32,000 nucleotides of DNA from Wallemia ichthyophaga EXF-994. Lineage: Eukaryota; Fungi; Basidiomycota. Every line of letters starts with the position of its first letter. The stretch's first letter is position 1. This document shows positions 1,937-32,000 of the stretch, one piece after another. The notes beneath the pieces are model-generated. The model was not told where the DNA came from, made no database searches, and was given only the letters and a program-made list of their open reading frames with translations. The stretch lies in assembly GCF_000400465.1 (NCBI RefSeq), contig NW_008806279.1:30001-62000 (forward strand), read 5' to 3'. Made by a program: the position numbers and the translations under genes.

Positions 1937-3667
1937 TTAAGCTGATAAGAAAGAGTCTACAGTTTCACTAATCTTCTTCTCAATTGCCTTCTTAACTTCA
2001 TCGGATGGTTGACCAGTGCCGAGGAGCTTCATTAATTCAGAGTCAGCCTTGATAGATTCAGTTGCAGTCTTCTCCCAAGCAACAATCTTCTCAACTGGAA
2101 CCTTGTCCAATAAACCGTTGATACCAGCGTAGATCAATGGAATTTGAACTTCAACAGCCATTGGAGTGAATTGTGGTTGCTTCAACAATTCAGTCAAACG
2201 TTGACCTCTGTTCAACAAGAACTTGGTTGAGGCATCCAAATCGGAACCGAATTGAGCGAATGCAGCAACTTCACGGTATTGAGCGAGGTAAAGCTTAAGG
2301 GAACCTGCGACGGATTTCATCAACTTGGTTTGAGCTGCTGATCCGACACGAGAAACTGAAAGACCAACGTTAATGGCTGGACGGATACCCTTGAAGAAGA
2401 GTTCAGCTTCCAAGAAGATTTGACCGTCAGTGATAGAAATGACGTTAGTTGGAATGTAAGCTGAAACATCACCACCTTGAGTTTCAATAATTGGGAGAGC
2501 GGTCATAGAACCACCACCGTGAGCGTCAGACATCTTTGCTGAACGTTCCAAAAGACGTGAGTGAAGGTAGAAAACATCACCTGGGTAAGCTTCACGACCT
2601 GGTGGACGACGGAGCAAGAGAGACATTTGACGGTATGCAACAGCTTGCTTGGAAAGATCGTCAAAGACGACAAGGGAGTGGCGACCGTTGTCACGGAACC
2701 ATTCACCGACAGCTGCACCGGTGAAAGGTGCCAAGTATTGAAGAGGAGCGGCCTCGGAGGCAGTAGCAGCGACGACAACGGAGTACTTCATAGCGTCATT
2801 CTCTTCAAGGGTTTGAACGAGTTGAGCGACGGTTGAACGCTTTTGACCGACAGCAACGTAAACACAGTAAAGCTTCTTCTTCTCCTCACCGGAGCTGTTC
2901 CAACGCTTTTGGTTGAGGATGGTGTCGAGAGCGACGGCGGTCTTACCGGTTTGACGGTCACCAATGATAAGCTCACGTTGACCACGACCGATTGGAACCA
3001 TGGCATCGACAGGCTTCATACCAGTTTGCATTGGCTCAGAGACAGAGGTACGTGGAAGGATACCTGGAGCCTTAACGGAAGCCTTACGACGTTCGGTAGT
3101 TTCGATTGGGCCTTTACCATCGATTGGGTTACCAAGGGCGTCAATGACACGACCAAGCATGGCTGGACCAACAGGAACATCGACAATTTGACCAGTACGC
3201 TTAACTGTGTCACCTTCACGGATACCACGGTCAGAACCGAAGACGGAAACACCAACGTTGTCAGCTTCCAAGTTAAGGGCCATACCGCGGACACCGGAAG
3301 CGAATTCAACCATCTCTTCGGCTTGGATGTTACGGAGACCGTAAACACGGGCGATACCATCACCGATGCCTTAAATGAGATTAGATGATTGTATTCTTGA
3401 TCAATTTTACTTTAAAAACTCACTCAAAACACGGCCAGTCTCTTGGACATCACCAGTAGCGCCAACACCAGAGATACGTTGCTCAAGGATGTTTGAAACT
3501 TCAGATGCAGCTGGCTTGGCTGTTGCGTAAGTGCGGGCCAAAGCTGGGCGTGACTGTGGAGTGGAGTGAGTGGGCGTGTCGGTGCAAGTCAACCAATAAA
3601 ATCTCACCATCTTTGCGAAGTTTACAACGCCACGCAATGCGGCAGGTCTGAATGCAGCTCTATGCAT
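1937..3667 (-). CDS. ATP1: Mitochondrial F1 ATP synthase alpha subunit; complement(join(1937..3369,3424..3553,3608..3667)), 540 aa
   Basis: Contains GDRQTGKT (Walker A), [23 protein letters not shown] and [13 protein letters not shown]. Two GT-AG introns restore MHRAAF... presequence plus [11 protein letters not shown]. Spliced length 1623 nt is divisible by 3. Confidence 0.98.
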
Positions 3668-4217: not shown

Positions 4218-5405
4218 ATGGTAAGAAATATCCGCGTCTTGAATCGTTTTCTCTTACGCTTGTTGGTACAGGGCAGGCGTAAGATTACTATAGCTCCTTT
4301 GAAGGAGGATCGTAATAGATCAGTCACCTTTTTAAAGCGTAAGACTGGCTTATTCAAGAAGGCACATGAATTGGGTGTTCTATGTTCTGCAGATGTCGCT
4401 GTCATTGTCTTTGGTAATAACGGCAAGCTACATGAATTCTCTAGTGGAAATATTGAAAAGATTTTGATGAAGTATACGGAGCACTCTGGTGAAACTGAGC
4501 GTCGGGGGCCGCGCGATTTCACTGATTCAAATGAGAACGATGACAATGATAATGATATTGAGCAAGATAATGAGCATGATGATAATATGGAACATCATCA
4601 ATCTACTCATTCACCGAGTGTTAGCGTTAGTGCAAGACAAGATGATAAAGACATCAAACCGCGCATCCAAGTCGATCAATTGGGTGATGAAAATGCTCAC
4701 TCACCTTCACCGTCATTTACGCAAAACCATCCAGCGCACCCACCGCAGCTGCCTCGATCTCCAAAACCAATCTCCCCGAAACCACTTTCACCTTATCCTA
4801 TGCCTTCGTCTTTCTTGTCTCCAAACTCACACACTCAACCACAGCATAATGAAACGTTTATGAATTGGCAATTTGCGCAGATGCAAGCTCAGATGATGTC
4901 ACAACAGCAACAGCAACAGCAACAGCAACATCAACATCAACAGCAACATCAACAGAGAACAACTCAACCATCACCGCAGCAGCATTTCTTATCACCATCA
5001 ACACACCTCCTCAATCCAAACTCACCCAATAGCTCTCATCCACCACCGCCGTTTTTTGCATCGCCAAACATGTCTAATATGCCAGGTATGCCATGGTACG
5101 CTCCCATTCCACCTGTAGCATGGCCACCACCTCCTGCGCCTCCCTCTCAACTACCAAATTCCATGTTCATGGATCCCTTCCAATTCCCCTTGGAGGGATT
5201 TGGTGGCTCATCAGAAACTCCATTCCAGTGGCCGATTTCAAATAAAGATAGTAGCAACGATAACAGTAGCGCACAAAATCCTCAAAATCCTCATGCCCAT
5301 AAATCAGCTGGTTCTGATACGGCTGCAAGCACAACAACGACAGCGACACCTGTCAAGACGGAAGATGACTCACCACGACCTGGAAAGCGAACGCGAAAAA
5401 GTTAG
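4218..5405 (+). CDS. RLM1: MEF2-type MADS-box transcription factor (Rlm1/Smp1-like); join(4218..4220,4272..5405)
   Basis: ATG|GTAAG...CTTAC...TACAG|GGC gives the canonical [39 protein letters not shown] start, followed by MEF2-like KILMKYTEH. The C-terminus is Q/P-rich. Confidence 0.85.
4902..4955 (+). repeat. Coding poly-Gln/His tract (CAA/CAG)
   Basis: Encodes [18 protein letters not shown] (18 codons). Confidence 0.9.
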
Positions 5406-26423: not shown

Positions 26424-26515
26424 TGTTGTAATAGTAGTATTAGCAAGATTATTCACATTTTAATACAGGATTGTGATTAAGATTAAAGAGAAACTAGCGA
26501 TGACTTGGTCTTACG

Positions 26516-29500
26516 CTAGATGATTGCGAACCAATTGCAAGAAGCTTTGGGTTCGACATATGTCCTATAAAACACTTATGAGAAAAGTAATTATCAGCGC
26601 ATCATCAACTCACCTGATATAGAATTTTGTGAGCGGTGTTTGCGGTTGAAAGTGCTTGTGCCAGACATGCGCGAGCGCACAGAGAATGGCGAATCCGCTC
26701 CTGTTCTGTAAGCTGAGTTTTTGTGGTTGGCATGATTGATGTGGCTCATGTCATGTTGCAGGCCCGCAACTGTATGTTTGCCACCACAACAAACTCTTGG
26801 GTCATCAAGGCCCTCATCAGATGCATCGTTGAGGTTCTCATCCTTGTAACGATAAGTTGCGCTTGATTTCGGTCTAGATGGACTTTCCAAGAAGCTAGCG
26901 TTGTTCGCTCTCAGGTATTCAGATGCAGGCGTACCTGCTCTCTTACCCGCTGATGAGCTATAGCCGGAGAAGTACTTTTTGGCACGAGGTGTAGTACCCA
27001 TTCCCATTCCAATATTCGATAGCGCTGACCTTGTCTTGGTTTTAGCAGTGGAGAACGACCAATCAGCATAACCAGTAGCTGTCTTTCCAACGCTGCTGCT
27101 TATTGAGTTACGCGGCTTAGAACCGAAGTCCATCTCTGCGATACTGCTAAATGATGGCCTTCCACTAGCCTCTGAACCGGCGTAAGGTGCTGGATTTATC
27201 GAGTTGCGTTGAAGAAGGTATGACAGTGCGTTCAGCCACATTTCGTGTCTCTCTCTATTTGATGCTGTTAATTTGAGCTCACGATCTTGTGAAGTGAAAA
27301 CAAGTATACTCTCGTGATGTAAGCCAGGTGGAGATGGATTTGGATCATCGATGCTCTCTACGCGCTCAATTGGAACACTCTTCGACTGGGTTTCGGATAC
27401 GTTAGGTCCACCCTGCTCATCTTCACTCCAGAAAAGCATCTTGTTGTATGGATGGAGCCAGAAGTATCTTCTGTGACGCTTGCCGGTATTTCCCTTTAAG
27501 ATAGATTTGCGAGTGTACTTGAAGAGGAATTCACCTAAAAGATCGTTAGTCCGGTCAGTCAAAGGTAAAAATCATCACTCACCAATCATGGTTTGCGTAA
27601 TAGCTTGAATGATTGGATCTGGTTGGGTATTTCCGAGTACATTGCTGCCTGCCATGCTGACACTGTCTTCATCGCTCTCGTCATCTTCGTCCAGATGATT
27701 ATTAGCACTCTTTGGCTCACTCAAGTGTGCAGAAGATGAGCTCACGCTGTAAGAACGGCGCTCGATATTCGACACAGTACCGAACGAGTCACTCGTCTTT
27801 CTTCTGTGTGATTGCGTAGATGTATTTCCGGGCTTGGCTGATCTGAAGCTACCGAGTGACGAAAGCGGTGTACCCGATCTACTATTGTGCTGACTACCGA
27901 CTGCACTCTGGAAAGACATGTTCGACATTTGTTTCCTCAATGCAGGTCTACCCTTAGAGCCAGTAGAGATGGTTTGAGAGCCTCTGTTAGTTGCTCTACG
28001 AATAAATTCTGGCGGCGGTGGTGATGTTGGTCTTGGTGGTGGCATACCTCCGTATGGCAAGGCTGTAGAACTTGAACGAGAGATGATGTCAATGTAGCCA
28101 CCTTGAACTGAAGTTGAGGAGGCTCTCCTTGGAACATCGGGAACCTGTCTAGATCCCCTTCTTGAGACACTCTTGTGCTTGTCTGATAGAGCTGTGCTGA
28201 CGTCCTCAACGTTGTGCTCCGATGTTTGATCAGGGTTTTCGAGATCGGCTTTTGGTTTACTTGTTGGAGATGTTGGATGCTCTTGTTCATGATAGACGTG
28301 AATTGTCTTGACACGTGGTGTGTTGTCATTGTCATTGTCGGTCTGTACACCGAGATGGGTTTGGCCTTGGAGTGTCTGAGATCCGACAGAGGCTGTATTT
28401 GGTTTCGTTGCAGGGAGGTGTTTGATTTTCTCAACCGGAACCTCAACTTTCTTTTCAACAGTCTTTTCGACGATTTTCTGGGCCGTGTGAGAAGTATAAT
28501 GACTGGAGCTGACTGTAACATACCTCAATCTCGATTGGTACCTCAACTGGCACTTCAACCTTCTTTTCAACAGATAATTCGACGGGTACCTCAACCTTCT
28601 TCTCAACAATTTTCTCAACAATTTTCTAGGCTGTGTGAGATGCATAGCAGGTAGCACAAAATAACATACCTCAACTGGTACTTCAATTGGAACTTCAACC
28701 TTCTTTTCAACAATTTTTTCGACAAGTTTCTGGGCTTTGTGAGGATTCTGGTAGATGAAGCATACTAAGACATACCTCAACGGGCACCTCGATTGGCACC
28801 TCAACTTTCTTGTCGACGACCTTTTCAACAAATTTCTGTGATGTGTGAGATTGTAATGCTGAGAGAAATCTGACTTACTTCCACAGGAACTTCAACAGGT
28901 ACCTCAACTGGTACTTCAATCATCTTTTCAACAACGTTTTCGACGATTTTCTGTAACGTGTAAGATTTAACTGGTGATGGGAATTTGACTTACCTCCACA
29001 GGAACTTCAACGGGCACCTCAACTTTCTTCTCCACAATCTTTTCAACGAGTTTCTCCACAGGTACCTCTTTCTCGATGACGCGTTCGTCTGGTTTGAGCT
29101 GCTTTTCGACAACAATTTCGATAGGCTTCTCGACGACGCGCTCAACGATCTTCTCGACTTCGATTTCCTTGGGTATTTCTATGATCTTCTCAACTGGTAT
29201 CTCGACAGTCTTCTCGACAATCTTCTCTACTGGTACTTCGATGATCTTTTCGAAAGGTACCTCGACTGTCTTCTCTACAGGAACCTCGACAACCTTTTCA
29301 ACGATCTTCTCGATAGGTACTTCTACTATTTTCTCTACAGGTACCTCGACTATCTTTTCTACAGGTACCTCGACAACCTTTTCAACGATCTTCTCGATAG
29401 GTACTTCTACTATTTTCTCTACAGGTACCTCGACTATCTTTTCTACAGGTACCTCGACAACCTTTTCAACGATCTTCTCGATAGGTACTTCTACTATTTT

Positions 29501-32000
29501 CTCTACAGGTACCTCGACTATCTTTTCTACAGGTACCTCGACAACCTTTTCAACGATCTTCTCGATAGGTACTTCTACTATTTTCTCTACAGGTACCTCG
29601 ACTATCTTTTCTACAGGTACCTCGACAACCTTTTCAACGATCTTCTCGATAGGTACTTCTACTATTTTCTCTACAGGTACCTCGACTATCTTTTCTACAG
29701 GTACCTCGACAACCTTTTCAACGATCTTCTCGATAGGTACTTCTACTATTTTCTCTACAGGTACCTCGACTATCTTTTCTACAGGTACCTCGACAACCTT
29801 TTCAACGATCTTCTCGATAGGTACTTCTACTATTTTCTCTACAGGTACCTCGACTATCTTTTCTACAGGTACCTCGACAACCTTTTCAACGATCTTCTCG
29901 ATAGGTACTTCTACTATTTTCTCTACAGGTACCTCGACTATCTTTTCTACAGGTACCTCGACAACCTTTTCAACGATCTTCTCGATAGGTACTTCTACTA
30001 TTTTCTCTACAGGTACCTCGACTATCTTTTCTACAGGTACCTCGACAACCTTTTCAACGATCTTCTCGATAGGTACTTCTACTATTTTCTCTACAGGTAC
30101 CTCGACTATCTTTTCTACAGGTACCTCGACAACCTTTTCAACGATCTTCTCGATAGGTACTTCTACTATTTTCTCTACAGGTACCTCGACTATCTTCTCC
30201 ACAGGCACCTCAACCTTCTTCTCCACAGGCACCTCGACGATCTTTTCTACTGGGACCTCAACGATCTTTTCTACTGGAACTTCGACGATCGTTTCTACCG
30301 GGACTTGGACGATTTTTTCAACTGGAACCTCTAAGATCCTTTCGACTGGGACCTCCACGAGTTTTTCGACTGGAACCTCGATGATTTTCTCAACCTCCTT
30401 CTCAACGATGCTCTCAACAGGCACCTCCTTCTCTACAATCTTCTCAATAACGCGGTCTTGCACACCACCCAACTGAGAAGAATCAGCGAGGTTAGTCTTG
30501 TGTGAGGTAGGCTGAGAAGGTGGAATGAAAGAATCACGGAGACCGCTAGCGCTCAGTTTGTTCTTGACAGCTCTGCCGCGTCTCCTACCCAACGACGACA
30601 TGGAGACGTTAGCTTGGGAGATATTGGTATTGGTATTATAATTGCTATCTTCTTCTGAGCTACTCTCCTGTTGAGTCCCTGTCGCTGATGTGCTGCTTGG
30701 TTGTTTGACTGGCGAGTGTGAAGCGAAAAGCGGATCGAGGTCGTCATCGTCGTTATTATCATCATTCTGGTCAGGTGAGTGAGAGGCATCTGTTTCGAAT
30801 TCAGGGAGCTGAATTGATGTTTGACTGGTGTCATCGAGCTGTTTGGAGTTAGTTATGTGCGTACACATATTTGGCAGTACTCTCAACTCACCTCAATAAC
30901 ATCACTTCTATCATACTTATCGTGCTTATCAGTCAAGGCAGACTTACGAAGTTTAGAAGCGCGTGATTTGCTTGGTTTGCCTTTGTTCTTGGATTGTAGA
31001 TTGGTTGGGCTGCTCTGGCTGACGTTAACTTGCTCCTCCTTCTCCTCATCGCTATTATCACCACTCTCATCACTCTCACTATCCTCAACACCTTCGTCCG
31101 GCCCTCTTTGAGACAGGGCCAATTTGCGTTTATATTCGATGATATGACCTTTTTCGTTGCGCAATTGTCTCTGCAGGCCAGCAATAACTCTCTCTTTGTT
31201 CCCATAAGCGACGCGTAGGGTTTCATTTTCGGAAGCGAGAGCAGTAGCGGTGCGAGCGCCACCTGGGGTCATATTAGCATCGTTAGTGTTAACGCGAGGT
31301 GGTCTGGGTGAATCGAAGACGGGCAGGCTGAAGTTACCCGTATGTCTACGTCTACCAGCTGAGTCGCTTTCCTCGAAGATCTCATCGAGGAGGCCCTGCG
31401 TGGGATGATACTCCCCTGGATGACCGAAATCGCTGCGATCGGGGTCGAATTCTGCGTCGGTGTTGAATCTGCGGCTGAAATCGTTGTCATACATCGTATT
31501 GTTCATGCTGACGTCGTTGGAATGGTTGCGTACACGCTTCGCTCGACCCTCCTTCTCTAATCTGTCGATCTCCTTCTTGGCACTCTCAACCGCACTGGCT
31601 AAATCACCCTTTTCACGCGTTGCTGTTGCTCGGTCTTTCCTAGCGAGAGCTGTTTCTGTCTCGTATTTTTGTTTAAGTTGCTCGAGTGATTGGTTCAGTT
31701 TCTCGCTATCTTGGCGCCGTTCTTCGAGGGAGTCTCTCGAGAGCGAGAGGGACTTAGTAAGTTTGTTGCGCTCAGCTTCAAGTTTGGTGAGTGAGTCCTG
31801 ATGGTTTGTGTTACTTGTGTACAGCTCCTGGTTTTGCATTTCGAGATTCCAGTTGTCTTCTTTGAACCTATCGACTGTCTGTTCGAGCGAGTTGAGACGA
31901 AGGAGGAGATCGTCATGTTTTGCGTGCGTGTGCTCCTTATCTAATTGAAGATTTTTGATAGTATCGTCGCGTTCACTGATCAGACTCTGTAGACGTCTCA
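26516..32000 (-). CDS. NUM1: Num1/ApsA/Mcp5-like cortical dynein/mitochondria anchor with coiled coil, VPVEKIVE repeats and C-terminal PH domain; 5' end lies beyond the window, stop at 26516 (if spliced) or 26594
   Basis: Coiled coil with [17 protein letters not shown] domain [14 protein letters not shown]...[41 protein letters not shown]. Introns at 30839-30891, 28951-28993, 28836-28878, 28730-28775, 28626-28669, 28478-28523 and 27535-27582 keep one frame. Confidence 0.88.
28478..28993 (-). repeat. Tandem exon+intron cassettes: 5 phase-0 introns and 4 small exons (72, 60, 60, 102 nt)
   Basis: Each exon encodes K[ILF]VE..VE...VP[VI]E..E. The introns are 43-46 nt, begin GTAAGT or GTATGT, and share a CTYACA branch motif. 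Confidence 0.85.
29283..30196 (-). repeat. Coding tandem array with an 84-nt unit, about 10.9 identical copies ([28 protein letters not shown])
   Basis: CGACAACC recurs at 29287, 29371 and so on to 30127 (period 84). Sequence lines 420 nt apart are identical. Degenerate 24-nt units flank both sides. Confidence 0.97.

Follow-up and report, generated by a model that had tools for sequence, protein, structure and literature searches.

How does a gene come to hold five short and similar introns in consecutive units of a single protein repeat? The question is posed by a 32,000-nucleotide (nt) stretch of fungal DNA (contig NW_008806279.1, positions 30,001 to 62,000; hereafter the window, meaning this whole stretch, whose own numbering is used throughout), where the minus strand at 26494–32000 holds a partial gene for a predicted cortical anchor of the Num1/ApsA/Mcp5 type, the 5′ end of which lies beyond the window. 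Num1 of Saccharomyces cerevisiae, ApsA of Aspergillus nidulans and Mcp5 of Schizosaccharomyces pombe are cortical dynein anchors. Five introns, designated here i1 to i5, interrupt the end of the repeat region of this gene, and in all likelihood they are paralogous spliceosomal introns that arose when an existing intron was duplicated in tandem within the gene, together with its exon.

Five similar introns in consecutive repeat units

The five introns and the exons between them lie on the minus strand, and their junctions were predicted from the sequence. In the direction of transcription, i1 (28951–28993; 43 nt; GTAAGT...CTTACA...CAG) is followed by a 72-nt exon (28879–28950), i2 (28836–28878; 43 nt; GTAAGT...CTCACA...CAG) by a 60-nt exon (28776–28835), i3 (28730–28775; 46 nt; GTATGT...CTCACA...CAG) by a second 60-nt exon (28670–28729) and i4 (28626–28669; 44 nt; GTATGT...CTCACA...TAG) by a 102-nt exon (28524–28625), with i5 (28478–28523; 46 nt; GTATGT...CTCACA...CAG) closing the series. 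Every intron is in phase 0 and splits the repeat at the same place (E/KIVE at i1, i4 and i5, E/KFVE at i2 and E/KLVE at i3); all four exons are multiples of three in length, and none of the introns is (0/5). The initial annotation, made from the letters of the window, had already reported the lengths of these exons and of four of the introns, the common split position and a CTYACA motif, together with ungapped identities of 32/43 between i1 and i2 and 30/46 between i3 and i5, and all of this was reproduced, the intron coordinates and identities exactly; the coordinates of i4 are supplied here. The frame is open only with all five introns removed (joint retention of i4 and i5 is taken up below) and then runs into the Mcp5_PH domain, which supports the intron model.

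The motif CT[CT]ACA occurs in 5/5 of the introns, its A lying 11 nt from the 3′ end. The background for this and the following comparisons consisted of 14 other candidate introns in the window, defined by GT..YAG ends, a length of 38–63 nt, flanking frames that stay open for 40 codons or more and a break in the frame upon retention. None of the 14 carries CT[CT]ACA in that position and seven (7/14) have CT[AG]A[CT], and two further introns of the anchor gene, iA and iB, use ACTAAC. The motif is a shared derived character of the five introns, not a general splicing signal.

Of the ten pairings of the five introns, eight reach global alignment scores of 9–22, above all 161 comparison pairs, for which the maxima are 7 (91 background pairs) and 8 (70 pairs of a repeat intron with a background intron). 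The initial annotation had staked its proposal on the five being more alike than unrelated introns of this genome, and against the window introns eight of the ten pairs are. When the interiors are shuffled with the splice-site ends held fixed, the pairs i1–i2, i3–i4, i3–i5 and i4–i5 stand at z = 3.4–4.8. Two subfamilies can be distinguished, {i1, i2} and {i3, i4, i5}, linked by i2 and by the shared 3′ motif AATCT[CT]ACA.

Origin of the introns

Two tandem periods detected by Tandem Repeats Finder span the region, one of 106 nt at 28588–28849 (76% matches), which is the sum of 60 and 46 nt, and one of 115 nt at 28777–29024 (78% matches), which is the sum of 72 and 43 nt. Because each period equals an exon plus an intron, they support the joint duplication of intron and exon. 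The similarity between i1 and i2 is likewise continuous over the exon-intron junction, with 27/30 bases matching in the exon and 15/20 in the intron. The proposal of the initial annotation that the introns multiplied with their exons by tandem duplication thus finds support in the period, in this continuity and in the whole-unit differences seen in relatives.

Two relatives are informative at this locus. The closer, L011, was recovered through an open reading frame (ORF) protein, P0244 (unspliced, 77% identity), in a search of representatives, and is ~80% identical at the nucleotide level in the downstream exon. Between the same flanks (the downstream one being SVGSQT) it has exactly two introns, a (44 nt; GTGAGT...CTAACA...CAG) and b (46 nt; GTATGT...TCTCACACAGCTCAG), with a 72-nt exon between them at the same place as the 72-nt exon of the window. 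Intron b is identical to i5 and i3 at 35/46 positions each and to i4 at 32/46, i5 being the closest (score 24), and for intron a the likeness to i1 and i2 is concentrated in the 3′ third; the two subfamilies correspond to these two introns. The distant relative, L006, with a guanine-plus-cytosine (GC) content of 30.5% and 59–65% protein identity, has a complete ortholog of 1567 amino acids with which the window gene is collinear, and this ortholog contains one 62-nt phase-0 intron, split before KPIIKYVDK, between collinear flanks. The upstream flank of i1 is collinear with those of intron a in L011 and of the sole intron in L006, and at this spot the intron count is 1 in L006, 2 in L011 and 5 in the window. 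The differences consist of whole exon-plus-intron units; the relatives are without the exons as well as the introns, as cassette duplication or deletion predicts. Between species the intron lengths differ by amounts that are not multiples of three (43 versus 44 nt), and the exons remain in frame and are more conserved than the introns. Metagenome scans for close orthologs returned none that was close, only the distant L007.

Five assemblies from read archives (L001–L005) are 99.7–99.8% identical to the window and carry the same five cassettes, differing from it by one single-nucleotide polymorphism in i3 (28737), by a few in exons and by a 1-nt insertion in iB, present in all five at position 27571. 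No polymorphism in cassette number was found among these five extra samples of the species. The comparison of strains and species that the initial annotation had called for therefore gives a divided answer, in that cassette number differs among lineages (1, 2, 5) but is constant in the six samples of the species, the window included.

The same assemblies bear on whether the segments are introns at all or remain unspliced, as would be expected of a decaying pseudogene or of an artefact of repeat assembly. The region adjoins an array beyond the reach of short-read assembly, the contigs of L001–L005 all ending at 29312, the edge of its perfect part, and the junctions are predicted rather than read from RNA. 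Still, the sequence across the five cassettes is the same in five independent assemblies, the exons are all open in a single frame that leads to a well-conserved PH domain, and the intron positions are common to two diverged relatives. Additionally, the proteome of Wallemia ichthyophaga contains a single Mcp5_PH protein, so that the anchor gene is probably the only copy if the species of the window is like it in this respect. Decay or misassembly is barely plausible as an explanation.

The adjoining array (29204–30211, minus strand) lies directly upstream of the cassettes and comprises twelve intron-free units of 84 nt (28 codons), 10/12 of them 100% identical, with 830 nt of exact periodicity. 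It is a young expansion, and the copy number of its unit may vary between isolates. The paralogous cassettes are 70–79% identical to one another, and the orthologous pair of i5 and L011 intron b is 76% identical; by this divergence the cassettes are old.

Identical target sites abound in the repeat, which leaves room for an origin in which the introns spread without exon duplication, one intron having been reverse-spliced or gene-converted into GAG/AAA proto-splice sites of existing repeat units. The trees of exons and introns are not clearly congruent, as such spread would allow, the 60 nt of exon ahead of the intron matching at 45/60 positions between i1 and i2 and at 47/60 between i1 and i3. 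Against this, dozens of the same VE/K sites in the upstream array are all intron-free, L011 and L006 are without the exons together with the introns, and both the uninterrupted similarity across the junction and the tandem period point to the exon and intron as one unit; spread of the introns alone is very unlikely. A derivation of the introns from the exon repeat itself (the Rogers model, or intronization) was also considered and rejected, as local alignments of the introns to the intron-free array were no better than those of shuffled sequences, with 44 to 298 of 300 shuffles reaching the score. Searched against the window by short-word BLAST, the five introns matched only themselves, and introner-like copies were not found elsewhere in the 32-kilobase window.

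Duplication of intron and exon together would have proceeded from a unit of roughly 105–115 base pairs, made up of the last 20–24 codons of the VEKIVEVP-type repeat and a short phase-0 intron in its entirety. The ancestral state was probably that of L006, with a single intron at the 3′ end of the repeats; from it would have come two diverged introns, type A (43–44 nt) and type B (46 nt), the condition seen in L011, and in the lineage of the window type A would then have given rise to i1 and i2, and type B to i3, i4 and i5. Misaligned recombination or replication slippage may have been the process that added or removed an exon and its intron together. Each copy kept a consensus 5′ site, the branch-like CT[CT]ACA motif and a YAG end, and because these signals are kept, constitutive removal of all five introns is the most likely outcome. 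The sole effect on the protein would be a spacer ~98 residues longer than with a one-intron gene.

Several points weigh against this account. The pairs i1–i3 (score 5) and i1–i4 (score 3) lie within the background range, and the homology of types A and B rests on i2 and the shared 3′ motif. The distance between paralogs is about that between orthologs, so the introns cannot order the events; the phylogeny of the introns that the initial annotation had in mind separates two subfamilies when L011 is included, but the distances are otherwise star-like and sequences of 46 nt too short to rank the duplications. It is possible that cassettes were lost in L011 and L006 instead of gained in the lineage of the window, since polarity is not fixed by two outgroup lineages, and it should be noted that both are represented by metagenome or read-archive contigs, that of L011 being only 1508 nt long. 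Finally, every junction in the gene is a prediction and not an observation on transcripts.

Duplication of pre-existing introns is already a known process, of which this locus is a small and tidy fungal example with copy-number differences between species. According to the summary in PMC4974935, a pre-existing intron was multiplied by internal tandem gene duplication in TOUCH3 of Arabidopsis (Knowles & McLysaght 2006), and segmental duplications containing entire introns were surveyed by Gao & Lynch (2009). As in those cases, the copied segment comprised an entire intron flanked on either side by exon sequence, the resulting tandem copies agree in phase and resemble one another in sequence, and the number of introns in the gene rises without the invention of a new splice site. 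The locus differs from them in the small size of the unit (~105 nt, with an intron of 43–46 nt), in its repeated copying to five, in its setting, a low-complexity repeat within a compact fungal genome, and in the presence of 1, 2 and 5 copies in three lineages. Such copying of whole introns is explicitly called propagation, not creation, of introns (PMC4974935). Intron creation of the Rogers type, in which an AGGT-containing stretch of exon is duplicated in tandem (Hellsten 2011; reviewed in PMC3443670), also alters the intron number through duplication within a gene, but there the new intron is former exon sequence, whereas the introns here resemble each other and not the exon array. Further, protein repeats in nebulin, collagen and others expand by duplication of exon blocks (PMC1553488); as there, repeat number grows through tandem genomic blocks that carry introns, and the exon pattern recurs along the gene. 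Most of those examples come from animals, with structured domains and long introns, while in this gene a young intron-free expansion adjoins old intron-bearing cassettes.

The known picture of intron multiplication is unchanged by this locus. It is uncommon, in fungi above all, for the mechanism of an intron gain to be legible in the sequence itself, and the locus is unusually clean in its tiny unit, five recognisable copies and three lineages with 1, 2 and 5. Old repeat growth that carries introns and young growth that is free of them can be compared side by side in the same gene.

Splicing outcomes and spacer length

The exon lengths and the intron phase raise a second question, namely whether the cassettes allow the length of the spacer to be adjusted by splicing. 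All 31 combinations of retained introns were modelled. If any one intron is retained, the frame closes short of the PH domain, at codons 992, 1025, 1050, 1276 and 1104 of the model. Joint retention of i4 and i5 adds 44 + 46 = 90 nt, which restores the frame without a stop, the intervening 102-nt exon being read in another frame; it is because this read-through is open that prokaryote-style ORF callers report an ORF at 27575–28831 and the protein P0002. The expectation of the initial annotation that retention truncates the protein ahead of the PH domain consequently holds for each intron taken singly but not for i4 and i5 together. Loci of this kind are easily broken by gene predictors.

Skipping is a separate matter. 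The initial annotation had suggested that any combination of exons could be skipped in frame, and arithmetically this is correct, as the exons are multiples of three and the introns are in phase 0. In a splicing-adjustable spacer, any 5′ site would pair with any downstream 3′ site to give in-frame length variants; every skip of the four internal exons would preserve the frame, the five introns carry splice signals that could almost be exchanged for one another, and skipping a unit would create an intron of only ~150–400 nt. That in-frame symmetry, however, arises automatically when a coding repeat duplicates and implies no function, and all five introns (5/5) have strong consensus 5′ sites, none of which looks weak or regulated. 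Introns of 43–46 nt also imply recognition across the intron, a mode that in fungi rarely yields exon skipping. In the W. ichthyophaga transcriptome, alternative splicing affects 15% of genes and is mostly intron retention, with a single exon-skipping event genome-wide (PMC3849046). Taken with these points, a spacer adjusted by splicing is highly improbable. There is at best a slight chance that the cassettes serve as an in-frame length dial, whereby occasional or regulated pairing of non-adjacent sites would produce anchor isoforms with varied spacers against a background in which exon skipping is otherwise almost absent.

The anchor gene and its surroundings

Once eight introns are removed, the spliced model of the minus strand gives one open frame of ~1710 codons that leads from the window edge through the repeat to the C-terminal domain. 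The stop codon, read from the sequence as TAG at 26496–26494, is less certain. The intron-free part of the VEKIVEVP-type repeat occupies 28994–30463 (minus strand), as read from its translation, and Tandem Repeats Finder reports periods of 24, 72 and 84 in it. The Mcp5_PH/PH domain lies at 27208–27615 (minus strand, iB included; coordinates converted by hand from protein positions), with a Pfam match to PF12814 (Mcp5_PH) at E=3.9e-42 (143.7 bits against a cut-off of 25) and one to PF00169 (PH) in the C-terminal part at E=5.4e-10. The visible N-terminal part is conserved with L006, rich in charged residues and, by eye, coiled-coil-like; Pfam gave no match in this visible part, the N-terminus itself, where the family has a coiled-coil domain that binds dynein and mitochondria, lying outside the window. 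The product is thus predicted to be a cortical anchor of the Num1/ApsA/Mcp5 type, in which a repeat spacer precedes a C-terminal PH domain that would bind membrane. Like Num1, ApsA and Mcp5, it has a C-terminal Mcp5_PH domain, a charged, coiled-coil-like N-terminal part and a central spacer of tandem repeats; unlike yeast Num1, whose repeat is generally known to be of another type, its repeat is of the VEKIVEVP type.

Three of the eight introns stand apart from the cassettes. Two are unrelated to the five, iA (30839–30891, minus strand; 53 nt), which has a branch-like ACTAAC and a position kept in L006, and iB (27535–27582, minus strand; 48 nt, phase 1), which also has ACTAAC and falls just within the PH domain. 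The third, iC (26565–26613, minus strand; 49 nt), is the probable last intron and derives from the model only. At iB, present in L011 and absent from L006, the coding sequence of L006 is uninterrupted and reads TQTMIGEFLFKY, which equals the predicted splice product (MIG/EFLFKY junction); this continuity validates the calling of junctions in the anchor gene.

The core EKIVEVP is also that of the alveolin repeat, found in cortical cytoskeleton proteins of alveolates (PMC3402405), and the Pfam IMCp family matches the repeat region (E=2.3e-6, 28.2 bits against a cut-off of 21.1), although the host is a fungus. VEKIVEVP-type repeats are further present in fungal Mcp5_PH proteins (P0119, on contig L010, and P0246) and in the bacterial-looking P0249, P0259 and P0275. 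Given that the same type is found in both fungal and bacterial-looking proteins, the repeat is probably a recurrent simple one, and the IMCp match would reflect this rather than common descent with alveolins. Contig L010 is a GC-rich fungal metagenome contig, and its Num1-like gene has a long repeat array with one phase-0 intron of ~125 nt after VVE (about 4840–4964).

Long ORFs on the plus strand at 28985–30476 were set aside as artefacts that the repeat produces on its antisense strand. Neither an Rfam scan nor a tRNA scan of the whole window gave a match. The window has a GC content of 44–45%, and the published value for W. ichthyophaga is 45.35% (PMC3849046). A gene for the mitochondrial ATP synthase alpha subunit is located nearby (1937–3313, minus strand), and the identity of its product is 96% to W. 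hederae, 89% to W. mellicola and at most 82% to all other fungi. By these identities and the agreement in GC content, the window belongs to a Wallemia species of the W. ichthyophaga/W. hederae group. At the start of the window, an ORF on the plus strand (86–1753) encodes a very acidic protein with a perfect run of EDEKED repeats (EDEKEDEKEDEK).

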